64,000 bases of DNA from Blepharisma stoltei ATCC 30299 (taxonomy: Eukaryota; Protista; Ciliophora). The translations under genes were made by a program, and so were the position numbers. The stretch covers positions 124,001 through 188,000 of the forward strand of contig CBFDEM010000034.1 of assembly GCA_965603825.1 (NCBI GenBank), written 5' to 3'. Within the stretch, counting starts at the first letter, position 1. Every line of letters starts with the position of its first letter. This document shows positions 9,664 to 55,800 of the stretch, one piece after another. The notes below the pieces were generated by a model. The model was not told the DNA's origin and did not search any database. It saw only the letters and a program-made list of their open reading frames with translations.

Positions 9664-11697
9664 ATGGTAAAAATTCGTGCATTTCATGGGTACGTTGCTG
9701 ACCAAGGAATAGCCCACAAGCTAATTGCTCCACCTTATGACGTTCTTGACAGTGACGAAGCTCGTGCAATGGCTGAAGGCAACCAATATTCTTTTTTGCA
9801 TTGCAATAAGCCAGAAATAGATCTTCCTCATGATGCCGATCTATATTCTGAAATTGTCTACCAAACAGGCCATGACAATTTAAAGAAATTTGTTGAAAAT
9901 GGCTGACTAATTAAAGAAGAAAGCGAAATTATTTATGTCTACGCAATTACCATGCATGGAAGAACACAATACGGAGTTATGGCTGGAGCATCGGTTAAAG
10001 ATTACGAGCACAACCGCATCAAAAAGCATGAACTTACCCGAAAAAAGAAAGAAGAAGACAGGACTAAACTCACAGACACCCAAGGTGCCAATGTTGGTCC
10101 TGTATTCCTTACTTATGAAGCAGTAGATGAGATTGATGCCCTCGTCAGAAATGTTGCTGCAAGAGCTTCATTTATAGATACAACGACTGAGGATGGAATA
10201 AGGCATGTCTTATGGAAGTGCACAATAGAGGAATCTCGGGAATTAGTTGAGCTTTTTAAGTCTATTCCTCATACTTATATTGCTGATGGACATCATAGAG
10301 CTGCTTCAGCCTTCAATGTAGGGAAAATCAGACAAAAAAGAGCTGAAGAAAAAGGAGAAAAACCAGCTAAAAGCAGCAAATATTTCTTGGCTTTGCATTT
10401 CCCACATAATCAGCTTAAAATTTTTGATTATAATAGAGTTTTGAGAGATTTGAATGGATTGACTGCAGAGCAGTTCTTGACAGCTTTAAGAGAAAATTTT
10501 GAATTATATGATATACAAGATCCTCATCCTCCTGCAAAGCATCATTTTTCGTTGTACCTCAATGGGAAGTGGATTGGTTTTAAAATTAAACCAGAAAAAA
10601 TTGTTGGAGGTGACCCAGTAAGCAATTTAGACTCATTTTTATTGACTAAATTATGCTTAGCACCAATTTTGGAAATAGAAGATTTAACCACAAGTGAAAG
10701 AATTGATTTTGTTGGAGGAATTAGAGGTTTAGAGGAGCTCGAAAAAAGATGTGGAAATGTCAAGCCATTGACCTGGGAACAGATAACACTGAACATTTTC
10801 CACGAAATCAATGACGCAAGAACCAATCCCCAAAAATTTGCAGAAAGGATTGAGCACACCCTCAAAAGCTATAAAGAAAATAGATCAAAGCATAGAGCTG
10901 GGTCAGTCCCTATAATGACTAGAGAAGGTATCAGTGCTGTCATAGAAGCCATTAATGCACTCAAAGCATCTGAACCTTTGCATGCTTTATCCTGGTCTGA
11001 AGGTCTTGCTAAGGCAGCTCAAGCTCATTGCAATGATTCTGGATCGCTTGGAATTATTGGTCATGTCGGATCAATGGAAAATAACCTTCAGGACCGTGTC
11101 GAATACTTCGGAAGATGGTCCGGAAGTGTCGCAGAAGCTTTAGACTATACTTCAGTCGATGGCTTTGAAGTTGTATGTGCATTTTTAATTGATGATGGCC
11201 TACCTACTCGTCCTCACAGACACGCATTGCTTAACCCAGATTTCCATAAGGTTGGCATTGGATCTGGCCCTCATTCAGAATATAAGACTACATCTAGCAT
11301 AATTTTTGCAGGAGATTTTCATGATAGTGCTGAATCTGATAGTGTAGAAGTCCCTGGGGGCGCTCCAGAACTAGCTGATGAAGTTTATAATTGGCTTGAT
11401 GGAGCTGTTAAAGTGACTTGCAACTTGAGAACTGAAACTGTTGGAGGGAAAACGAGGAAAATCATGAAGAAGATTTGGGAAATGTCGGATGGGACTGAAC
11501 AGATCACTGAAAATGAAGTGAAGGAGGATAACGGACTTGTGAAAAAGGACTGTGTAGCTGCTATTGCACTTTATCCAGTTCAGGTTGAAGAAGTGATGGC
11601 TATTGCAGATGCAGGCCAGATTATGCCGCCAAAATCGACGTGGTTTGAACCAAAGCCAAGGTCTGGGATGGTGGTGAATATATTTAAGGATGATTAA
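9664..11697 (+). CDS. DUF1015-family (ParB/Srx-like) protein with an internally inserted CAP/SCP domain; 1 TGA=Trp
   Basis: PPYDV, KPEIDLP, IKKHELTR, YIADGHHR, IDFVGGIRG, MPPKSTWFEPK; TGA 9904 reads GWLIKE; CAP motifs between 10759 and 11547. Confidence 0.88.
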
Positions 11698-12206
11698 ATC
11701 TTTAATTTTTAGAAAAGATTAAACAGTAAGTATCTTTTTCTAACTAATCTGAATTATGTGCTAATCCCATTTTGTCACTCCACAAATTGCGAATTCATTA
11801 GATTTTCTAATTAAATAAAATAGAATGAATAACATATTAATAACTTACATTTTAAATTTTATTATAGAAAATGCATTTGAATTATAATTAATAAGTCTGG
11901 TGCTCTAGAAAGCTACGCGTTAGCAATTCAAATGAATAAAAATCTGTCACAATCATTCACAAAATAGCATTCATTTAAGATCTGTTACCTCTTTTTTCTT
12001 TATGATTGTTTATAATCCCATAAAGAAAATGATTTATTCACCTCTTATTATTTAAATTTCTTATTTCACCTATTTAATCAGCATTTTTATATCCCTCACC
12101 TAAGTTTGCTCATTAATGGTATTTCACTTCTGAAAACCCAAAAAGCCTTATTTTTCAATATTTTTATATACCAAAAAGCAATCCTCAAAATTATTTATAA
12201 ACAATA

Positions 12207-27151: not shown

Positions 27152-30100
27152 ATGTCCGAAGAATTAAGAAAAACACTTGCAAGCAGGCTTAGACCTGGGG
27201 ATAGATTTACAAATAAAGGCTTATCACGAAATAGCAGCAGCAGTACTCTTACCGTTTCTAAGCCAAAGCAAACTTTAATGCCAAGACTTCAATCTCTTAA
27301 TCAGTCGACTACCAATATAAAAAAGCCAAAGACCCTAGAGCCTATTTCTCCTTTCTTTAAAAGCACAGTTTTTTCTCCTGCGATGACGGTTATGACAAAG
27401 TCAGGATCCATGATATTTGGAGAAGACACCAAAAAACTACCGAAACTGCCAGATGAGCCAAAATTCGAGCCAATTTTTTCATCAACTAAAGGCTTCAAAG
27501 CTAAAAACCTGCCTCCACTTAAAGCTCAGCCAAAGAGGAAGCATATTCATGGAGAATCCAGGTCACTAATTGAAGACGAAATGCTAAATACAAGCATTCC
27601 TCAAAACCCTACACCTTATGATTTTATTCAAGTCATTAAATCAGACCCAGAACTAATGGAAGACTTCTGGTACTGCAACCGCAAAGGCGGCTCCTATGAT
27701 TTTGAGCTGGTCCCATTTAAGAAAAAGAACCCTAATGAATACTTAACAATCAGCTCACGAGGTGTCACTCATTTTATCAGTGGGGAAGCTTATTTTTTAT
27801 CTTTAGAAGAATGGGAAAGAGAATACAAGCTATATCAGAGACTTAAAGAAATCAGATTTTTCAAGCAGTACAAAAAATGGAAGAATTTCTCACTATGAAA
27901 AAACTTGCGAAGGAGAAATATGATGACTGAAAGGTCGCAGTTTTTGGAGCATGAGCTATTTATTCTTGATAATAAGCTGAGAGATCCATTGCTGAATGTA
28001 AGACACCAGAGCTGGAAAATTTTAAGGTTTGATTTATTGGATTTGAATTTTGATAATGTGAGGACTATTGAACAGTTTAATGCGGCACAAGACACGAAAA
28101 GAATTGCTGTAGGAGATGAGCTTGAAGACTTGGAGACAAATATCAAAAATTTAGTATCAATTTCTTGCAAGGAATCATTGGAAGCTTTTAGGAGAGAAAA
28201 TAAGACAACTGTTAATGATGAAGAAGGCAGAAAAGGAGTCAATGAAGATGCAGACCCGTTTTTAGTAGGCGATATTTCTAATAAACAAATGCCATATACT
28301 CAAGAAGCGATTATCAGAACCCATTATAAAAGACTTGCAAAATTTATAAGACTTTGTGACTATCAAATTATTGATGCAAAAATGAGTTTATCAATCCAGT
28401 CAGCACAAAAGGTGTTGAAAGTGATCACTTTTGACTATGATCAAAAAGATAAAAAACCTAACATGCAGCGAAGACAGCAGAGCCCATTATTAGTCATCAA
28501 CGCAGACTTCGAACTAAGAAACATCTTCTATGAGCCTGACAATGAAGCTGTAAAAGTGGCAATCGACGATGCTATATTAAGAGGACTTACCATGCTTTTA
28601 AATAACTATATGCTAGTCAGTGTCCCTGAGTTTGAAAGATACACAAAAGCATTAGAAGAATTTGAAGAAAAACCAGTCGATGAAGACTTTGATTTATTGC
28701 AAATGATAGTTAATGATGATATTATAAAGCGAATTGGCATTGAAATCAAGGATGGCATCGACCGCTCCTTTAGAGCTCTGATTAAGTTCTCTTTGCACTT
28801 AATCCCTAACCTTGATATTTATATGCAAAATTATGAAATGAATGTAGAAAGATATAGAGATGCAGAAATTGAAGAAATTAAGAAGGCAATTGACGAATAT
28901 TTACGACAAATGCAAGAATTTAAAACAATGAAAGAAGAAGAAGATGTGGGGATTTTTCAACTGCATGTCCAAAATATCAAGAGAAAATTGATACCATCCC
29001 CAAACCAGTGCATGGAAAAAATAGAAGGGCTCCTCCCAGAAATCGCATTAGATTCAGCAATGAAGCTGACAAAAGTCCTAGGGGAATATAACAATAACAT
29101 TAAAGGGGTCCCAAAAACCGTTGAAGAGTATATTTACATTCTTAAGCATATGAAAGAAATAGAGAATAATTTGCAGGATATCACTAACCGCACTAATGAT
29201 TTAAAAGATTTAATGCAGCTTATGGAAACTTACAGTATCAAATTTACAGACCTTAATAAAAGAAAATACAATGAGACTTTAACTTCTCTAGATGCTTTGA
29301 GAACCAAAATGCAAGCATTTTATGAGCGTGGAGAAAATGATAAAACAAAATTCACAAGAATGCTGAGGGATAGTGCTCATTCAGTTGATAAAAGAAATAA
29401 TGATATAAAAGAACTGCTTAAAGATGAAATGTTCGCGAATAAAGATGCAAATAAAGACACTGTCATTGAAATTTTGACAGAACTTGGTGAAAAAGTTACA
29501 AAATTGGTGCAGGATACCAAAGATTTTAGGAATTATTATTTGGAGCTCGAAATGGAGCCGAAGGAATACCCAGAAGTGGAAGATACCTTTAAAGATTGGA
29601 AAAATAAGAATGAAATGTGGAGAGCTCTTGATGAATGGGAGAAGAAAATTATTATATGAAGCTCCACACCATTTAATAAGATTGATGTTGAACAAATCAC
29701 AAGAGAAGTTGATGGGTACAATAAAATCGCTAAAAGGTGTAAATCATTGGAAGACCAAGGAAATTATGTCCCACAAGTTCTTAAGTCGTATGTAGATGTA
29801 CTGAAAGATACCATGCCAATTGTAAGCGATTTAAGGTTTAAAGGACTTGAAGAGAGGCATTGGGAGCAGATAAGAAAAGTCATTGGAATCGACATTGATA
29901 TAAGGGATGAGTCATTTACATTGAAGAAGCTTTTAGATATCAAAGTAAATAATGTGAAAGAAGAAATTTCAGAAATTGCTTTAAGAGCGAGAAAAGAAGA
30001 AGAGATACAAAACCAACTAAGCGAAATCGTGTCAGGGTGGGATAATATTGAGTTTCATGTTGAAAAAGTTGATGAAAGCTATATCTTTAAAGAAGTTGAT

Positions 30101-33100
30101 GATATTATGGTGAAGTTGGAAGACTCTCAAGCTGGGCTCTCTACATTGATTTCAAATAGATTTATCGGCCCCATGTTTGAGAAGGTCGACTACTGGAATA
30201 AAATTTTCAAAATTTTTGCAGCAACTCTTGATGAATGACTTCTCTGCCAAAAGCAATGGGGAGAACTAGATAAAATTTTCAAAAGTGGCGATATTGCAAA
30301 AAAGTTAAACAAAAGCTACAAAGTTTTCCAAACAGTCGATACTTTTTTCAAAGAAAGAATGAAAAAGGTATGAGATTCCCCTAACGCTTTAAAAGCCGCC
30401 ACAGAAGAGGGGCTGCTCAAAAATTTCCAAGACACAAATAAAAACCTTGAAAAGCTTCAAAAGAAAATAGAAGAGCATCTTGATAAACAAAGGGTCAATT
30501 TCCCCAGATTTTTCTTCCTCTCAAACGACGAGCTTCTCATAATTCTTTCAAATTCTCAAAATGTCCGTGAAATTCAGACTCATTTAAAAAATATGTTTGA
30601 AAACATTTATGAGCTCGAATTTGAAGAAGAAAAAACTGAATCATTTACAGGCTTGATTTCTGCTGAACGAGAAACATTGACTTTACATTCAAAAATCAAG
30701 TCTAAAGGAAATCCTGATGAGTGGCTTAAGGTTCTTGAAATGCAAATGAATGAGTCCTTAAGAAGATATATAAGAGAAGCTATTAAAAAATATGGCGATC
30801 TTTCTAGGAAAGAATTTATTTTAAGCCCAGATCTGGTAAGCCAAGTTATATTATGCACTGCAATGATTATGTGAACTTGGTCAACTGAAGAGAATTTGTC
30901 AGGGAAAAGTGATGTAAATGAGTCTTTAACTGATTGGCATGACGTGATTAATGGGTATTTAGAAGAACTTACTAATCTTGTTAGAGAAGAATTAACGCTG
31001 GCTATGAGGAGAAGAATTGTAGCACTTGTTACTCAAGATGTGCATAATAGAGACACTGTAGAAATGCTAAAAGATGAAGAAGTCACCTCAGCTGGAGATT
31101 TTAGATGGCAAAAACATTTACGCTATTATTGGGCTGATTTTGAAGAAAAATTCAAGATTTCGCAGCTTAATGCAGACCTGGAATATGGGTTTGAATTTAT
31201 GGGAGCTACAACTAGACTTGTGATCACCCCGCTTACTGATAGATGCTGGATGACAATTACGGGAGCTATGAAAATCAATCTAGGCGCTGCTCCTGCAGGC
31301 CCAGCAGGTACAGGAAAAACTGAGTCAGTGAAAGACCTTGCTAAAGCTATGGGGAAATATTGCATTGTTTTTAACTGTTCTGAACAAATTACTTACCAAA
31401 TGATGGAAAAACTGTTTATGGGACTTTGCTACACAGGCTCATGGAGCTGCTTAGATGAATTTAATAGAATTGATATCGAAGTTCTTTCAGTTATTGCACA
31501 ACAACTTCGAGTAATAAAGCAGTCAAAAGATGACAATAAACAAGAATTTTTCTTTGAAGATAAAAAAGTGGCCTTGAAAGCTGAAACTGGCGTATTTATC
31601 ACTATGAACCCAAATTATGCTGGAAGAACTGAGTTGCCTGACAACTTAAAAGTCCTTTTCAGACCTGTCTCTATGATGGTTCCTGATTATACTTTAATTG
31701 CTGAAATTATGTTATATGCTGAAGGTTTCAAAAATGCTAAGCATTTATCAGGAAAAATGACAAAATTATACAAGCTTGCTTCTGAGCAACTTTCACAGCA
31801 AGATCACTATGATTTTGGTATGAGAGCTGTAAAAAGTGTTTTAAATATGGCTGGAGCTTTGAAGAGAAAAGAGCCACACCTTACAGAAGACATAATTTTA
31901 ATCAGAGCTATGAAAGACTCAAATGTTCCGAAGTTCTTAAAAGAAGATCTGGTGCTTTTCAACGCAATTGTGCAAGATCTATTTCCTGAAGCAGAGATCC
32001 CAAGCGCGGATTGTGGAGATTTAGAACTAGCCATTAGAGAATGCATTGGAAAAGATCATTTACAGCCTATTGACACTTTTGTAAATAAAGTGATCCAGTT
32101 ATTTGAAACTTTTGAGGTCAGATTTGGAGTCATGATTGTTGGTCCCGCCACAGCAGGAAAAACAACTTGTTATAAAATTTTAGCTCATGCTTTATCTTTA
32201 TTGCGGAGCAAAAACTCACGCAATCAGAGCTATCAAAAAGTGCAATTTCAAGTCCTCAATCCTAAAGCAATTTCCATGGGTGAGCTATATGGGGAGTACA
32301 ATGAAATTACACTAGATTGGAAAGATGGCTTGGCAAGCTCAATTATGAGAGAATTTAGTAAAAAAGAAGAGCTCACAAGGAGATGGGTTGTTTTTGATGG
32401 GCCAGTTGACTCATTGTGGATTGAAAATATGAACACTGTGCTTGATGACAATATGATGCTGTGTTTGGCAAACCAAGAAAGAATTAAATTAAAGCCAGAA
32501 ATGAGAATGCTATTTGAAGTAGCTGATCTTGCGTCTGCATCTCCTGCTACTGTTTCTCGCTGTGGAATGGTGTATATGAACATTGAAGCTGTCGGCTGAA
32601 AAGCTCTTATTCAAACCTGGATAGCTAAAGAATTAGCTGAATGACAGCCTGAACAAAGAGACCACTTAATTGTTCTAATTAATACTTATATGGGAAAAGC
32701 TTTATCTATTATGCAAAGACTTACAGAACCAATCCCTACTATGACTAATTCACTGATAGCTTCATTTTGCAAGCTGCTGAACGCTGTTGCTCAATTTGAT
32801 AGAAATCCAAGATTCAACGATAATATTGAGCAATTTAAAAAATATTTAGACAAAATATTTGTGTTCTGCTTAACTTGGTCAATTGGAGGAGCATTAGACA
32901 CTAATGGTATGATAAAGTTTGACTCAGCAATTTCTTCTGAGCTTAATGTAGACTTACCAAAAGGCTCATTATATGACTCTTGTGTAGTCTCAACAAAGGT
33001 AGCTGGAGATTATAAGTCATGGGACAATATGAAGACTGATTTTGTATATAACCCTGAAGCTAGCTATTTTCAACTGTTGGTTCCTACAAAAGATACAATA

Positions 33101-36100
33101 CGCTTTGAGCACCTTTTGAAATATAATATAAGCATTCAGCATCCAGTGTTTATTACTGGATATACAGGAGTTGGGAAATCGGTAATTATAACGAATACTT
33201 TGATTAGTATGAAAGAGACTGACAATTTGTACCCGATTTTCATTACTTTTTCAGCTCAAACTTCATCTTTGTATACACAAAATTCTATCGTAAATAAACT
33301 AGATGCGAAAAGAAAAGACTTGCTTGGAGGCCCAGGGACCAAAAAAGTAGCATTATTGATTGATGACGTAAATATGCCAGCTGTCGAAAAATTTGGGGCT
33401 CAGCCACCGATTGAGCTTTTGCGGCAATTTTGTGATCAAGGTTTCATTTACGACCGTGAGAAAAAGTTTGCATTGAGAATTATCGATACAACGCTTATTT
33501 GCTGTGCGGCACCACCTGAAGGTGGAAGAAGCAAGCTAACACAGAGGTTTACTCGACATTTTCATATGTTATGCATTCCTCATACAAGTGAAGAAAATAT
33601 GATCACCATTTTCAAAACCATTTGTGATGGCTTTTTTAGCAGAGGCTGGAAAACTGAAGTCATTGCTTCAGTTCCGCAAATTGTCTCAGCGACTATTCAC
33701 ATTTATCAACAAATCAGTGCGGAGTTATTGCCAACCCCAGCTAAATCACACTATTTATTTAATCTTCGAGACGTTTCTAAAGTATTTCAAGGACTACTTA
33801 TGGGAAAACCAAGGACTTTAAATAATCCTGATATGCTGATCAATCTTTGGATTCACGAAACTATGAGAGTTTTCCATGACAGGCTTATAAATAAACAAGA
33901 TAAGAGGTGATTTACTGAAATGGTCACTAAAATGCTTGGCCAACATTTTCGTCTTTCAGCCACTCATGACCAAATGTTCGAAGAAAAAACAATCATGTTT
34001 GCTGACTTTCTGAGAGGAGACCTAGCAATGGAAGACAGGGAATATGAAATGGTGACAAGCTCAAGCACGCTTAATAGGAGGATTGGAGAGTTCCTTGACG
34101 AATACAATTCAATCGGGACTCATGAGATGAAATTGGTATTTTTTAACGACGCAATTGAACATTTGTCAAGACTCTGCAGAATCTTGAGACAGCAAAGAGG
34201 AAACGCAATGCTTATTGGAGTTGGCGGATGTGGAAAGCAATCACTCACAAAGTTAGCATCTTTTATGTGCCACTGTGAATTTTTCCAAATTCAAGTAACA
34301 AAAGATTATAAGTTGTCTTCATTTAGGGATGACTTGAAAAAGCTGTTTATCGCTGCCGGAGGAGTAGTACCAAAGCCTTCAGTCTTTTTGTTGACTGATA
34401 CCCAAATCATTAGTGAGTCTTTTCTTGAAGACATCAATAATATTTTAAACTCAGGAGAAGTCCCAAATCTTTTCACAAAAGAAGAACTTGACCCTATTGA
34501 ACAGGACTTAAGGACAGTTGCAGAGAGAGAAAAGGTATTTGAAAATATCTATAACTTTTTTATACAAAGGGTAAGAGAAAACCTCCATATTGTTCTGTGT
34601 ATGAGTCCTGTAGGAGACTCTTTAAGAGTTCGCATGAGAATGTTCCCGTCCTTAGTAAACTGCTGCACCATTGACTGGGTCGACCCATGGCCAAATGATG
34701 CCCTTTTAAGCGTGTCTGAAAGCAAATTACAAGACTTGACTCTTGATTTCTTGCCCAAAGAAGAATCAATAAATCTCAAAAAGGCTTTAGCAAAGCTATG
34801 TGTAGAAGTCCATCAAAGTGTTATAGAAATGGCTGATGAATTTTATCAAATTTTAAACAGAAAAGTGTATATCACCCCAAAAAGCTATATTGATTTAATA
34901 GCTGGGTATTTCAAGCTACTAGAAGAAAAACAAAATGAACTAAGCTCAGCTCGGCAGAGATATAGAAACGGTGTAGATCAGCTAATTAAAACAAATATAG
35001 ATGTGCAAGAAATGCAAAAAACGCTTGTAAACTTAGCGCCGGTATTAGAACAAAATAAAACTGAATGTGAGGAGCTTGGGAAAAAACTTGAAATCGATAC
35101 TGTACAAGCAAATAAAGTGAGAGAAATTGTGGAGGACGAAGAAAAAGAAGTAAATATGAAAACACAAGAAATTAAAGTGCTACAAGAAGATGCAGAAGCT
35201 GATTTAAACCAGGCTATGCCTATATTAGAAGAAGCTATAAGAGCTCTAGGGAATATCAACTCAAAAGATATAGCAGAAATCAGGACTTTTGCCAGCCCTC
35301 CCAAGCTAGTTGTATTTACCTTAGAAACCATTGCAATACTGCTAGAAGCCCCTACATCTTTAGAATCCATTAGAAAAATCCTCCAAAATAACTTTTTAGA
35401 CACCCTAATGAAATTCCCTAAAGACAGCATAAAGCCAGTCACGCTAAAAAAACTGAAAAATAAGATTGCAAGCCTGCCTGATTTTACCCCTGAAAAAGTT
35501 GGAGGTCAAAATGTAGCTTCAAAGTCCTTATGTGAATGGGTCTACGCAATAGTAAATTACGCCCAAGTGTCTAAAGAAGTAGAGCCTAAAAGGAAACGTC
35601 TTGAAGAGCTAAATAAAACTTTAGCTGACGCAATTGCAAACTTAACTGATACTCAGAATAGGTTAAAAGTTGAGCAAGATAAAGTCGCTGAATTAGAAGC
35701 CAAATTTAAAGCAGTTTTAGATCAGCAAATTAAGCTTGACAATGAAATTCAGACCACAAATTTAAGACTTTCAAGAGCTTCTGTGCTTACAGAAGGGCTT
35801 AAAGATGAGCACCAAAGATGGAAAGTTTCTGTTGACAGGTTGACAGAAAAATTGAGAAATATTTTAGGTGACATTTATTTATCAGCTGCTTGTATTAATT
35901 ACTATGGGCCATTTTCAGGGCTATATAGAAATAAGCTTGTCAGTTTTTGGATGAGCAAATGTGCAGAGCTTGGGATCCCATTTAGCAGTAATTTCGATCT
36001 GCAAGAGGTAATGGGTGATCCATTGGTAATTAGAGAATGGAATATTGCCACTCTTCCTACAGACTCAGTAAGTGTTTGCAATGCTATTTTAGTCACAAGG

Positions 36101-39100
36101 TCGGAAAGGTGGCCACTTATGATCGATCCACAAGAACAAGCAAACCGATGGATCCGAAAAATGGAAGAATCCAAAGGCTTAAAAATCATTAAACAAACTG
36201 ACAAAGATTTTGAAAGAAATTTGAAAACTTGTTTAAGGGAAGGGCTTCCAGTCTTAATTGAAGATATAGGAGAAACGCTTAATCCTTTGTTAGACCCTGT
36301 TTTAAATAAGCATTTAGTTGAGCAATCTCCAGGACGATTTACCTTAAGAATGGGAGAAGCTGATATTGACTATGATCTTAATTTCAAGCTGTATATCATT
36401 ACTAAGCTTTCAAACCCTCATTATCTTCCTGAAATCAGCATTAGAGTTAGTTTAATCAATTTTACTGTCACAATGCAGGGGTTAGAAGAGCAACTTTTAG
36501 GAGATGTCGTTAGGAAAGAAGAGCCGAAAATTGAGATTGAACAAAATAAACTGATAAAAGATATAGGAGATGGCCAAAGAGAACTTAAAAATTTCGAGCA
36601 GCTGATTTTGCAGTCACTGTCTGCAACTGAAGGGAATATCCTTGATGATGCCAAGCTAATAGCAAGACTTGATACAGCCAAAAAATCGTCAGATTTGATA
36701 AATAAAAGAATGATAACGGCGGAAAACACAAAAAAGGAAAATGAAGCTGCAAGAGCCAAATATCAAAAAGTTGCTAGAAGAGGGTCCATTTTATATTTTG
36801 TAATTGCTGATCTCGCAAATATTGATCCAATGTACCAGTACTCATTAAGCTACTTTTCTAAATTCTTTAACGCAATCATTGACCAAGCACCAGCTTCCGC
36901 AGATCCTCAGGCTAGGATTGAAATCTTGATAACTGCAATTACTGAGGTGATCTATTCTAATATTTGTAGAGGGCTATTTAATGCCCACAAGCTTATTTTT
37001 AGCTTTTTATTGGCAGCACAGATACAAAGGGATGCAGGACTTATCAAAGAAGCAGAGTGGGCAATTCTTTTAAGAGGAGTCACTATGCTTCCTGCAGATT
37101 TCAGGAGAAGTGCAAGACCTGATATAGCAGGAATTACAGAAAAATCATGGAATTTCGTGATTTTCCTACAAAATATAAGTGAGCCTTTCATGAATCCCCC
37201 TATAGGCAAAGAAATGCTAAACAATAAAAAAGAATGGCAAACTTGGATTAACTCCAAAGATCCACATAAAGAGCCACTTCCAGGAACTTACAATAATCTT
37301 TCAATCTTCCAAAAAATGCTTCTAATAAAAGCTTTCAGGGATGAAAAAATTATTTATATGGTTTCAGATTTTATTAACGAAGTCCTAGGACCCAAATTTG
37401 TGCAGGTCGCCCCAACATCAATGGAAGAAGTTTATGCTGAAACGACAAAAAGGACACCAATTATTTTTATTTTAAGCCAAGGCGCTGATCCTATGTCAAT
37501 GATAACCAGACTGGCACGTGACAGAAAATTCCTTGACAGAATTGACCCAATTTCGCTTGGTAAGGGCCAAGATGAAAAAGCTAAAAAAGCTATTGAAAAA
37601 GGCTTAAGAGAAGGAAAGTGGGTGATTTTACAAAACTGCCACCTCGCAAAATCATGGATGCCTGACTTGGAAAAACAAATAGAAAACTTTGATGACCCAA
37701 AGTCCGCAATTCATGAAGAATTCAGAATCTTTTTGACATCAATGCCTTGCAATTATTTCCCAATACCGGTTTTACAGAATGGGGTAAAGGTTACAATTGA
37801 GCCTCCTAAAGGAATCAAGTCAAATCTCCTGCGATCAATGGCTCTGATGACTGATGAAAAATTATCTGAGTCTTCAAAGCCTGAAATATGGCAGAAATTA
37901 ATATTTTCCTTATGTTTATTCCATGCAGTCATACAAGAGCGTCGAAAATTCGGTCCCCTAGGCTGGAATATTCGCTATGAATTTAACGAAAGTGACTTAG
38001 AAACTTCTATAAGAGTTATTGAAAACTTTTTAAATGAACAAGAAATAGTTCCATGGGAAGCCATCAAATTCGTCACAGGAGAAATTAATTATGGAGGCAG
38101 GGTCACCGATGATTTAGATAGAAGATGCCTAATGAGCACTCTCTCCTATTTCATGAAGCCAGAAATATTAGACGATGCCTTTAAATTTTCTGAAAGCGGG
38201 ATATACGCAATGCCTTCTGAAACTTCAATTCAGGCTTATAAAGATTTTGTCATGAATTTACCGAATACAGATGAGCCTGAGATCTTTGGAATGCATGAAA
38301 ACGCAAATATTACTTTTCAGCAGCAAGAAAGTGCAAGTGTATTAAATGCAGCTTTATTGATTCAGCCCAAAGAAAAAGGAAAATCTTCAATGGGAAAAAC
38401 TCCAGATGAAATGATTGATGAGCTCGCAGCCAAGTTTTTAGAAGAATTGCCAAAGGTGTTGATGAAATCTGAAGCAGGGAGTCATACTTTTGTGGTAGAA
38501 AATGGGCTTATGGAAGCTATGGCAACTTTTCTAGGCCAAGAAATGGAGAGATTTAATAGACTTTTGGTTAGATGCAAAACAAGCTTAGAAGACTTGAGAA
38601 AAGCCATACAAGGGCTAGTATTGATGTCTGATGACTTGGATAAAATGTACAATGCAATGAATAATAACTCTATCCCTGAGCTCTGGAATCGTGTAGCTTA
38701 TCCTTCTCTTAAGCCTCTCGCATCATGGTTTAGCGACTTAAAAGAAAGGGTTTCTTTTATTCGCAGATGGCTTATTCATGGAAAACCTGAGTCTTATTGG
38801 CTAAGCTCGTTCTTTTTCCCACAAGGTTTCTTGACATCAGTTATGCAGAGCCACTCTAGGAAATTCCGAGTCCCAATTGATAATTTGATTTTTACTTTTG
38901 AAATGCAGTCGTTTACAGAAATTGAAAGAATTGAAGAAAAAATAGAGGATGGGGTATATGTGCATGGTTTATATATGGAAGGATGCAGATGGGAAGCTGA
39001 AACTAATGTCCTTGAAGACTCCAAGCCTGGAGTTATGTGGACTCTGGCACCTTTGATTTCATTTATTCCGAGTGAAGTGCAAGATAATGTGGATGAAGAG

Positions 39101-39268
39101 GAAGAGTATTATTTGATGCCTGTATATAAAACGTCAGTAAGGGCTGGACAGCTATCTACAACTGGGCATTCAACGAATTATATAATTTCAATAGACGTTC
39201 CAACTCATAAAAAACCTCAACATTGGATTCAGAGAGGTGCAGCATTTTTGTGCCAGCTGAATGATTAA
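27152..39268 (+). CDS. Axonemal inner-arm dynein heavy chain, DNAH6-like (about 4038 aa, no frame-breaking intron); 8 TGA=Trp
   Basis: All fragments share one frame; P-loops GPAGTGKT, GPATAGKT, GYTGVGKS, GVGGCGKQ; FPRFFFLSNDEL; HWIQRGAA; TGA at 27896, 29657, 30236, 30371, 30872, 32597, 32642, 33908. Confidence 0.96.
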
Positions 39269-51331: not shown

Positions 51332-53011
51332 TTATGCGAAATTAGAAGGACGTCTTCTTTCAGACGTGTCTTTATGCTTTATTTTATTTTGAAATCTGGC
51401 ATACTCTTCGGGGAATATTTGAATAGATCTTCTTTGCAATCGGTTAATGTTTTTCGGAGAAGGGCAATCGTCTTGAATTTTGTTTATGGCATAGAAATGA
51501 ATAACTTGCACGACACGCTTTTTTAACAAATTTTCATTCGAGTATAAAATAAAAGTCGGAACTTGAGGGTAGACTCATTCAGTTGGCTCCTCAATAATAT
51601 TTTCTGAGAGTAAGGCATCAAATTCAATTTCTTTCAATTCTCTTTCTTTATACTCATCAATTTCTCGGCATTTAGCTTTATATTTATTAAATTTTTCAAT
51701 ATATAATTTTGCTTGGTTTCGATAGTATTTTTGAAGATTTTCTTCAATCACTTTTTGCGGCATTAATTTTTCGGGCCTATCGACTTTTATTTTTCCGTTT
51801 TTTCGGTATTTTTTTATTAGATTTGATTGAATTTTTACTCATAATAGCATCAAGGCATGAAATCTTGCTTTCTTAATATCAATAATACTGTTCAGGCCTA
51901 CTTGCAATGCTTTTTTATATTTTCAATATTGAGTCATAAGCGTGAGAAAGGTATTTTGGTTCTTTTTCCTCTTAAAGATTTCATTATTCAAAATTTTCAA
52001 GTGTAAAGACCTTCTGTTGTTTACCCATTTTTTTATTCTCATAACATTTTTGCTTAATTTTCACATAAGATTAAGTCTTCTATTCTTCAATAAACATAGC
52101 TTTAGTTTTCCTAAAATTCTTGATATTAAATAAAGAAATGAAATTTGTTTTTTTACTCTAGCTCGTCTTCTCTAAATATTGGTTACCTTCTTTCCTTCTG
52201 TTTTATAGTATATAATAGTATGCAGCCCAATAATTGATGATAGAATAATCCATGATGTATAAATCTGTTTAAATTCTGCCCTTTTTTCATTGAACATGAA
52301 TCTTTGCATTTTATACTTCAATCTGTTTTCTTTTGTTTCTCTATTTATCTTGTCTATCCTCTTCTTTGCTTCTTTTACAGTTTCAAGTGTAATATTGTGC
52401 TTATTTGCCTTTTCGCAATGTATTTTTGACTTTTTCTCAGGTAAATATTGAGTCATGTCTTGGTTTCTTTCGCTTATTTTATTTGAAAAGCTTAAATTCC
52501 TCCTCCTTCTCTTACTTAAAAACCATTCAACTTTGCCTTCAAAAGATTCTTCAAATCTAGACTCAATAGGGAAATATCCTCCTGAAATTGTTTGCTTTTG
52601 ACTTGGTGAATAATCTCCAGGTCCCAAGTTAATCCTAAAAGCAGGACCTCTAAATTTAGCTTTTTTATATGGTATTGGAAATACTTCCCTTTTTAATCTA
52701 AAACTTATTTCTTTATTTCCAGACCTAGGTGACGGTGTTCCTAAAAGATTTGTAATTTTTGTTTTTTCTTTAATTAAATCTTCTTTTTCAAACTTGAATT
52801 CAGGAACTTTTAGCATATCATATTGGGAAAACTTTAATTCAAGCTCTTCAAATTCCCCTAATAAAGAATTATTTCTTATACGCTTCGAATTTAAGTTAGA
52901 AGTCCCAGAATTCGATGAACGACAGCAAGATAAATAGGCTGATAAGTATTGATCCTTATCAGATTCTGTATACACATATAAATGCTCCAGGTCCAAGTGA
53001 TTTTTGGACAT
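51332..53011 (-). CDS. Basic hypothetical protein, tandem paralog A; one 15-nt intron, 4 TGA
   Basis: Three ORFs join into 555 codons; single SHIPPO/STPG-like GPGDYSP motif; colinear with paralog B. Confidence 0.8.
52172..52186 (-). other. 15-nt intron GTAACCAATATTTAG
   Basis: GT..TAG, conserved at the same position in paralog B. Confidence 0.88.
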
Positions 53012-53281
53012 TTATAGAAGAAGTAATGAAAAGATGTTGCCAAATTTCTAATAATCGGATGCGCTATCTCAACGTTATTAAAATGTAGAGTTTAATATAA
53101 TCTATTAAAAAAGATTAATAATTACTTAATTCTTATGAAGAAATAGTCAACAATTTTTTTAAAACTGTTATTTGAAGAAATTTGAAAGAACTATTAATTT
53201 AATTCTTTAATTTATGCTTTTAAAAGCAAGGTAATTAACTAGATTTAATGAAGATACACTGGATTACAATTTTTTTTCGGG

Positions 53282-53367
53282 TTCAACATGTTGAAAAAAT
53301 CTTTCTAATTGTGAAACAAAATTCCTACGCCTGTAATCTCCATCCTTTAACGGTTCAACATGTTGAA
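53282..53367. repeat. Two copies of the perfect 14-bp palindrome TTCAACATGTTGAA (53282-53295 and 53354-53367)
   Basis: Read directly; both are preceded by GG; period 72 bp. Confidence 0.9.
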
Positions 53368-53494
53368 TTTGGTCATGGACAAAATTTGTGTATCAGATAA
53401 TGCAAATTTGTTGAAATCCGATTCACAAAGCCTTCGAACATTGATGAATTAAGCTAAGCAAATAAAATAATTAAAAATTTAAATAATTCAAAAT

Positions 53495-55186
53495 TTATAA
53501 TGCAAAATTAGAAGGTCGCCTTCTATCAGTTTCATCTTTATATCTTATTTTATTTTGGAATCTGGCATATTCTTCAGGATATATTTGAACTGATCTTCTT
53601 TGGAATCTATTTTTGCCTTTTGGAGATGGGAAATCGTCTTGGATTTTACTTACTGCATAGAAATGGATAACTTGCATCACACGTTTTTTCAACAAATTTT
53701 CATTCGAGTACAAAACAAAAGTAGGCGCTTGAGGGCTTATACATTCGGTTATCTCATAAATAATATTCTCTGAAAGTAAAGCATCAAATTCGATTTCCTT
53801 TAATTCCCTTTCTTTATATTCGTCTGCTTCCCGGCACTCTGCTTTATATTTATTATATTTTTCTAAATATGATTTTGCTTGAGCTTGAAAGTATTTTTGA
53901 AGATTTTCTTCAATTACTTTTTGAGGTATCAATTTTTCTGGCTTATCAACTTTTATTTTTCCAGATTTTCGGTATTTTTTTATTAGATTTGATTGAATTT
54001 TTACTCATAGCAAACCTAATGCATGAAATCTTGCCCTTTTTATTTCAATTATCCTTTTTAAACCTATTTGCAATGTTCTTTTATATTTTCAATATTGAGC
54101 CATAAGTTGAAGAAGAGTATTTTGATTATTCGATCTTTTAAAGATTTCAGTATCCAAAATTTTTAAGAGTAAAGACCTTCGGTTATTTACCCATTTTTTT
54201 ATCCTCATAGCATTCTTGCTTAATTTTCAGATAAGATTTATTCTTCTATTCTTCACTAAGGATAACTTTAGTTTTCCTAAAATTCTTGATATTAAACAAA
54301 AAAATGAAATTTGTTTTCTTACTTGACCTCGCCTTCTCTAAATATTGTTTACCTTTCTTCCTTCAGTTTTATAATAGAAAATAGTATGTAGACCAACAAT
54401 AGATGCCAGAGCAATCCATGATATATATATCTGTTTAAATTCTGTCCTTTTTTCATTAAACATAAATCTTTTCATTTTATATTTTAATTTGCCTTCTTTT
54501 GCTTCTCTATTCATCTTATCTATCCTCCTCTTTGCCTCTCGTACAGTTTCAAGTGTAATATTGTGCTTATGCACTTTTTCACAATGTATTTTTGATTTTT
54601 TTTCTGGCAAATACTGAGTCATATCTTGATTTCTTTCACTTATTTTATTCGAAAAACTTAAATTCTTTTTCCTTCTTTTACTTAAAAACCATTCAACTTT
54701 GTCTTCAATAGATTCATCAAACCTGGGCTGAAGAGGGAAATATCCTCCTGAAATTGTTTTCTTTTGATCTGGCGAATAATCGCCAGGCCCTAAGTTAATA
54801 CAGTTAATGCTAAAAGTAGGGCTTCTGAATCTAGCTTTTATAAATGGTGTTGGAAGTAAATCCCTTTTTATTCTAAGACTAATATCTTTATTTCCAGATT
54901 CTGGAGAAGGTGTTGCCAAAAAATTAGTGATTTTTTTTATTTCTTTATTTAAATCTTCTTTTTCAATTCTAAATTCAGGAACTTTAATCATTTCATATTG
55001 GGAGAACTTTATTTCAAGTTCTTCAAATTCTCCTAATAAAGAATTAGCTCTTATTCGTTTTGAATTTAAGCTAGAAATGCCAGAATTCGGTGAACGACTT
55101 CGAGATGAATAGGGAGATAAGTATTGGTCTTTATTCGATTCTGCATACATATATGTATGTCCTAGCTCTAAGCGATTGTTAGACAT
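53495..55186 (-). CDS. Basic hypothetical protein, tandem paralog B; one 15-nt intron, 3 TGA
   Basis: ATG 55186 (MSNNRLEL) matches paralog A start (MSKNHLDL); 559 codons after splicing. Confidence 0.8.
54338..54352 (-). other. 15-nt intron GTAAACAATATTTAG
   Basis: GT..TAG, paralogous to 52172-52186. Confidence 0.88.
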
Positions 55187-55800
55187 ATTATAGGAAAAGT
55201 TATGAAAAGATGTCGTCAACTCAATAATTCTTTATTGAGATATCTGAACGTTAATAAAATGTTGAATCTACGAATTTTAATATTTTCAGTTAATATATTT
55301 TAAATCGACATTAAAAAATTATATTAATAATAATTTATTTATCACCCCTTAAGGAGTCAATTTTTCTCTTATTTTTTCAGCTCTTTCCAAAAACTCTTGA
55401 ATTTTTTGCTATAAATAACGTACAATTTTTAATTTTTTTAGTACAATTTCTTCAAATTTTCAGCTAAAAGCACCGCTTCTGTCAAACTCAACCCAAAAAT
55501 GAATTAAAAATTTTATCACGGCTAGGTTATGCTACTATATCATATTCATTCTCATATAGGATGGGGAGCAATAATTTATTAATTTTTCAAATAAAAACCG
55601 AATTTATGTGTTTAATAAGACACTATAATCATTACTTATAAAGAGATGAATGGAAAATGTCGACAATAGAGGAAAAAGTTTTTCAACATTTAAAAACCAA
55701 TTTCTATCTAATATAAAATTTTTACGGAGAAAAGCAGGGTGCATAAATAAGTACTTTCTGTAATAAAACATATTCTAAATGATAATTTAGATAATTTAAA

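Follow-up and report, generated by a model that had tools for sequence, protein, structure and literature searches.

A complete CAP protein nested in a DUF1015-family protein of the ciliate Blepharisma stoltei

The stretch of DNA analysed, referred to as the window, comprises 64,000 nt of Blepharisma stoltei ATCC 30299 (contig CBFDEM010000034.1, here C34, positions 124,001 to 188,000 of the forward strand), and coordinates given without a contig or species refer to it. The assembly searched has 41.5 Mb in 64 contigs. In the somatic genome of B. stoltei, UGA is read as Trp and introns are 15-16 nt long (PMC9942806). The gene described here (9664..11697, + strand, as are all of its parts) is an intronless open reading frame of 677 aa under this code and encodes a SerBK/DUF1015 protein with a CAP protein nested in it; its neighbours in the window are kinesin and copine genes. 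The single in-frame TGA (9904..9906) is read as Trp81, and of the 15 aligned homologs that reach this column, 12 have Trp there. Elsewhere in the window, an open frame of 4038 codons with UGA as Trp was found at 27152-39265 (+ strand), and a tandem pair of paralogous genes at 51335-55231 (- strand), each apparently interrupted by a 15-nt GT-AG intron.

The N-terminal host part (aa 1-363; 9664..10752) contains a ParB/Srx-type nucleotide-binding domain and most of a second (lid) domain, and matches SerK/SbnI and the Pfam family DUF1015 (PF06245; 318 bits against a gathering threshold of 25.8, profile positions 1-324). Two of its motifs are invariant: HELT (10027..10038), in 144 homologs and every fused copy, and the nucleotide/metal-binding motif DGHHR (aa 208-212; 10285..10299), which was aligned with the same motif of the SerK homolog 1vk1. 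Judging from motif order, E123 of HELT is presumably the counterpart of the catalytic glutamate of SerK. The insert (aa 364-626; 10753..11541) was delimited by alignment and covers the donor from start-codon to stop-codon position with a few linker residues added; the original prediction of about 263 aa proved exact, but its position at 10759-11547 was shifted by two loop codons. The insert consists of a CAP/SCP domain (aa 367-554; 10762..11325; PF00188, E 8e-10 and 40 bits, cut-off 21.1), a 26-aa acidic linker and a three-stranded beta-meander (aa 569-623; 11368..11532); the CAP assignment had been predicted correctly, but the predicted acidic tail resolves into this linker and the charge-neutral meander. 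The C-terminal host part (aa 627-677; 11542..11697) supplies the last lid strand, a helix and the invariant motif PPKSTWFEPK (11626-11655), and returns to the catalytic domain. Its last 49 aa lie beyond the Pfam DUF1015 model and align gaplessly to the C-terminus of every unfused homolog; a Pfam scan, expected to give a split DUF1015 hit around a CAP hit, gave DUF1015 and a CAP hit inside the insert but no split. By alignment, the invariant residues of the host motifs HE-T, DGHHR and PK(S/T)TWFEPK are all kept in the fused copies, and every motif quoted in the original prediction is present in the sequence. Among 203 homologs, the spacing between GGIRG and PPKST was 41-45 aa in 198, 72 aa in one and 302-304 aa only in the four fused proteins; the original prediction had put the flanking motifs a few residues apart, and the distance at the loop itself is 2-3 residues. 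A signal peptide, predicted to be absent, was not found in the fusion, nor was a transmembrane segment. Two homologs differ in other ways: P0302 has about 30 extra residues in the same loop, and P0200 carries an N-terminal DUF2062 membrane domain.

The fusion of a DUF1015 enzyme with a complete CAP gene product was confirmed as real. One contig from a probable RNA run spans 9664-11729 without gaps, with zero depth in the flanking intergenic bins (the RNA status of runs X8-X11 is a guess), and a DNA contig crosses the entire region, from a DNA run that is possibly the source of the assembly itself; both junctions are spanned as the prediction required. A paralog on contig C19 carries the insert at the identical site, a Blepharisma japonicum transcriptome contig encodes an ortholog of the C19 copy, and a third ciliate with UGA as Trp (SRR24908292), probably another Blepharisma, has an ortholog of the window gene with the same two upstream neighbours. 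The fused genes number four and come from three species, of which two are named Blepharisma and the third is probably one as well; the Stentor orthologs are without the insert. The fusion gene of the third species converges on a neighbouring gene for an archaeal-type phosphoglycerate mutase (L020:10082-11395), the two being tail to tail; this enzyme makes the precursor of the serine pathway, and since the neighbour in the window differs, the arrangement may be due to chance. No insert-skipping joint was found, the lone reported skip being an unfused paralog on contig C37, and the junctions and insert ends have no terminal repeats, target duplication or intein terminal motifs. Other signs of excision (splice motifs, TA or inverted-repeat boundaries, an insert-lacking form) were not found either. 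Misassembly, an intron, DNA excision and an intein were each rejected on the gapless contig, the transcriptome and third-ciliate copies and the clean junctions. That the insert is an artefact or is removed later can hardly be entertained: contigs drop rare forms and the RNA run is a guessed one, but a gene-bounded gapless contig is joined by an independent transcriptome contig, and an intron of this length would be foreign to a genome with introns of only 15-16 nt (PMC9942806).

The predicted structure has both folds intact, as had been anticipated, and the enzyme appears to re-form around the insert. The AlphaFold model of the fusion has a mean pLDDT of 89 and a pTM of 0.69 with low-confidence linkers, compared with 97 and 0.92 for an unfused Stentor protein; the lower pTM is perhaps partly a matter of alignment depth (44 versus 144 rows, few covering both domains). 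In the model, the insert stands where the unfused protein has a turn of three residues joining the last helix of the lid domain to its last strand, and the host secondary structure equals that of the unfused protein element for element. The host (residues 1-675) superposes on a bacterial DUF1015 model with 411 residues aligned at an rmsd of 1.3 Å, and the predicted model has an atlas TM of 0.97 by target. Residues 97-676 match SerK (5x0b) with Z 12.9 and rmsd 5.5 over 224 aligned residues, the same Z being obtained with and without the insert, and SbnI (5ujd) is matched with Z 11.7. A PDB sequence search with the host gave nothing significant; the PKST motif after the insert lines up with PKTT of the SerK homolog in a weak alignment (E 0.74 overall). 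The CAP residues 367-551 of the model match known CAP structures (4ifa, Z 16.9, rmsd 1.9).

Five free-standing relatives of the insert (258-267 aa) are encoded in the genome, of which three paralogs (258-264 aa) are 60-64% identical to the insert over nearly the full length. In the alignment, the donor start codon falls some four residues inside the insert, and the last donor residues coincide with the insert end, so a whole coding sequence was captured; because the donors are intronless, DNA capture and retrocopying are indistinguishable. Trees did not pick out the exact donor paralog. The donor family is also present in Stentor, and its free members in both genera have neither a signal peptide nor a hydrophobic N-terminus. 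The sequences suggest that the subfamily was already cytosolic before the insertion, which agrees with the predicted capture of a cytosolic CAP module and removes the contrast that had been drawn with secreted CAP proteins. The family has the layout of CAP domain, acidic linker and beta-meander; within this genome, the meander, conserved throughout the family, occurs only in proteins of this CAP subfamily. It has no Pfam or atlas match, and its structural matches are weak (Z < 4). A meander of about 50 aa is also C-terminal in several protist CAP proteins (P0240, P0287, P0301). Distant family members contain multiple CAP repeats, in some cases together with centrin-like EF-hand domains, and the EF-hand-fused relatives are about 41% identical. 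One such open frame (contig C56:157042-160263, 1325 aa) has five CAP repeats and a terminal centrin-like EF-hand domain; related CAP and EF-hand proteins occur in other assemblies (P0338-P0340), and no published description of the architecture was found. A search for this CAP inserted in other hosts found none, although its sensitivity is limited, as the known fusion of the C19 type escaped it too; DUF1015 was absent from all 11 metagenome CAP loci.

In a tree of the hosts with the insert removed, the four fused proteins form one clade (support 88/84, moderate), sister to unfused Stentor-type proteins of 414 aa (support 100/100), and all outgroups, Stylonychia included, are unfused. The host part is 67-71% identical to the Stentor-type orthologs and has no long branch. 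Monophyly of the inserts was not rejected (p-AU 0.41) and the insertion site is identical in the fused copies. A single insertion after the split from Stentor, followed by duplication (C34, C19), is the simplest history. The insertion is old, since synonymous sites are saturated between the paralogs; they are also saturated between the window gene and its ortholog. From the distribution of the sequences, the DUF1015 enzyme itself predates the heterotrich-spirotrich split. The suggestion that the gene was horizontally acquired did not hold as a trait of the fusion, the host grouping in the trees with unfused proteins of Stentor and Stylonychia; any bacterial transfer of the enzyme was earlier than the fusion and separate from it. 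Recent transfer was rejected, as the gene has the GC content and codon use of its genome and the enzyme falls within ciliate proteins; for an older transfer, the trees give neither a date nor a source. The idea that serA and DUF1015 arrived together as an operon was likewise unsupported: of the 80 bacterial loci that come closest to the SerA-like protein of Blepharisma, only one has DUF1015 within 4 kb. No broader occurrence of the fusion turned up: three clusters were found among 5.8 billion proteins, and no further fused protein among the best 150 matches of an exhaustive search. On a provisional reading of the table columns, the unfused Stentor orthologs SteCoe_10955 and SteCoe_19245 have been detected as proteins and are transcribed with anterior enrichment, and SteCoe_10955 falls in group 1 of a regeneration time course.

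The insert is under purifying selection. Between C19 and its B. japonicum ortholog, dN/dS was 0.087 for the insert and 0.039 for the host, the six variants that other runs showed in the insert were without exception synonymous, and in-frame deletion back to the short loop was seen in no copy. Of 77 columns conserved in free CAPs, the window copy keeps 73, its ortholog 71 and the C19 copy 54, the C19 insert having drifted much on a long branch. The cavity residues, assigned by motif, are kept in the window copy (H467, E491, D510/D511 and H518), where the second tetrad acid is Asp, as throughout this CAP family, compared with the usual His/Glu/Glu/His; in C19, H455 and H467 are lost and position 467 is Arg. 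It is rather unlikely that the insert is a tolerated passenger, a neutral insertion at a permissive loop that is conserved mainly so that the last host strand returns, perhaps still doing the job of a free CAP independently. The loop takes an insertion elsewhere (P0302), the C19 insert has drifted far, free CAP paralogs persist and Stentor lives without the fusion; yet no copy has reverted in frame despite the saturated synonymous sites, and retention of 73 and 71 of 77 columns, cavity residues included, in the window copy and its ortholog exceeds what folding alone requires.

For the host, recent genetics give a likely function, and it is less obscure than the original prediction implied: the family was named SerBK in 2026, with resemblance to SbnI noted and the chemistry left open (PMC13759103). 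It is also reported that E. coli serB is complemented by a DUF1015 protein from Clostridium (GapMind 2026; bioRxiv 10.1101/2024.10.14.618325, PMC13759103), that a Bacteroides DUF1015 protein is required for serine use, and that CBO1128, BT1151 and CDIF630erm_01132 are members (both bioRxiv 10.1101/2024.10.14.618325, PMC13759103); the enzyme is known from genetics, and its reaction direction is disputed by the discoverers (PMC13759103). Together with the predicted structural match to SerK, these genetics support the prediction of a ParB/Srx-fold small-molecule kinase with a link to serine. Searches of the B. stoltei genome found two SerC genes over the cut-off and two SerA-like genes whose best match was PGDH, below the PGDH cut-off; SerB was not found (best 36 bits against a cut-off of 144), and there was no match over the cut-off to HAD-IB/ThrH. 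Presence of SerA and SerC with absence of SerB is the bacterial SerBK pattern; histidine-phosphatase or IMPase-type families could also supply SerB activity. The fusion gene is not adjacent to them, the SerA-like and SerC genes lying on different contigs, and such clustering would not be expected in a eukaryote. The SerA-like and SerC proteins have no presequence-like extension. On contig C53 (248996-252352), two near-identical SerC genes lie about 2.3 kb apart with the same open frame beside each, a recent tandem duplication or an assembly duplicate. The unfused third paralog of the host (C37:219864-220712) has a short basic N-terminal extension, which resembles a mitochondrial presequence; similar extensions were seen in P0010 and P0013. 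We infer from the sequences that the fused genes encode the cytosolic SerBK and C37 an organellar one with putative targeting.

It is likely that the host is an active SerBK-type enzyme that would interconvert phosphoserine and serine by nucleotide-dependent phosphotransfer and so complete a SerA-SerC-SerBK route; from its sequence, the fusion probably performs the last step of the serine pathway in a genome without an ordinary SerB. A changed substrate is improbable, in which the fusion would be a kinase or NTPase for some other substrate that its CAP domain brings in, leaving serine synthesis to the unfused C37. Such a paralog does exist, and ParB-fold proteins vary in nucleotide and substrate; against this, the fused host has the identity to unfused orthologs given above and no long branch, with all invariant residues, and it is C37 that has the presequence-like extension, which the SerA-like and SerC proteins do not have.

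As to the origin of the insert, the sequences show that the lineage leading to Blepharisma, once separate from Stentor, gained one complete, intronless, cytosolic CAP gene in frame, in the short loop between the last helix and the last strand of the lid domain of a cytosolic DUF1015 enzyme. The fused gene was then duplicated (C34, C19), and the unfused paralog C37 persists. For its role, we propose that the CAP domain and beta-meander would hang off the lid as a semi-independent appendage outside catalysis, an interaction or localisation handle that would tether the enzyme to partners or to cortical or membrane sites of the free CAP paralogs. This role is suggested by the loose predicted packing (pTM 0.69, low-confidence linkers), by selection that persists after loss of the metal site in C19, and by the EF-hand fusions in the wider CAP family together with the precedent of cytosolic GAPR-1, which works through membrane and protein binding; that Stentor does without the insert counts against it. 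Given a SerBK-type host, we regard the handle as evenly balanced between right and wrong, and the whole explanation (fusion, SerBK host and CAP handle) as the best one and somewhat short of an even chance.

CAP tetrads bind Zn or Mg, and an allosteric sensor is accordingly conceivable, if unlikely, in which the CAP cavity would bind a divalent metal or small ligand and shift the open/closed balance of the lid and with it the rate or direction of SerBK. The insertion lies in the lid domain immediately before the invariant C-terminal motif, H467, E491, D510 and H518 are kept in the window copy and its ortholog, and the paralogs differ exactly at the cavity (H467 to Arg in C19), as would a regulated and an unregulated isoform; however, the model shows no fixed packing between the domains, with flexible linkers, C19 is under purifying selection without the site, and one tetrad glutamate is aspartate family-wide. 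In its most specific form, the insert would make SerBK a ligand- or metal-gated switch in which lid closure sets the direction of serine/phosphoserine flux, C34 being regulated and C19 blind, which we consider distinctly unlikely. If true, it would be a case of an intracellular CAP domain as an enzyme regulator, in a eukaryote using SerBK instead of SerB. As natural domain insertions go, this one is unusually clean: the surviving donors, the unfused Stentor orthologs and two diverging fused copies make the effect of the insertion directly measurable. A CAP domain built into an enzyme whose activity can be read from growth, by complementation of E. coli serB, also offers a test bed for CAP function.

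No paper describing the architecture was found, as the original prediction had supposed, and databases name the C19 paralog a plain SCP-domain protein. In the passages covered of the literature on DUF1015, no eukaryotic or CAP-linked member is mentioned, and for DUF1015 a survey of ParB folds has only a bacterial construct. Relative to SerBK as found in that literature, only in bacteria, the present data extend the family to ciliates and point to a eukaryotic phosphorylated serine pathway whose last step does not depend on SerB. The fusion shares with bacterial SerBK the PF06245 match over the cut-off, the invariant residues, the predicted fold (1.3 Å) and SerA/SerC without SerB; it differs in being eukaryotic, in having three paralogs that are unclustered with serA/serC, and in the insertion of 261-263 aa in two copies, which is absent from the bacterial homologs examined. 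With SerK (5x0b) and SbnI (5ujd), the host has in common the two-domain fold, DGHHR and the C-terminal PK(S/T)T, at 13-16% identity (best sequence E 0.74), and it has about 100 extra N-terminal residues and the insert. Like B. anthracis 4ifa, Borrelia BB0689 (4d53) and YkwD-like proteins, the insert has the alpha-beta-alpha CAP fold with two cavity histidines and a glutamate, and like GAPR-1 it is cytosolic; unlike these, it has neither a signal peptide nor a myristoylation site, has an extra N-terminal hairpin region and the C-terminal beta-meander, and is nested in an enzyme. The free ciliate CAPs (SteCoe_11710, CAG9311702), which are the donor family, share 58-64% identity with the insert along their whole length, meander included, and are uncharacterised stand-alone proteins of 254-270 aa. 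As in natural domain insertions in enzymes generally, one domain sits in a surface loop of the other and neither fold is lost. With two established families and an established process, domain insertion, the fusion does not amount to a new kind of system; it differs from domain insertions in general in that what was inserted was once a complete gene, and in that both its close donor paralogs and the unfused sister orthologs survive.
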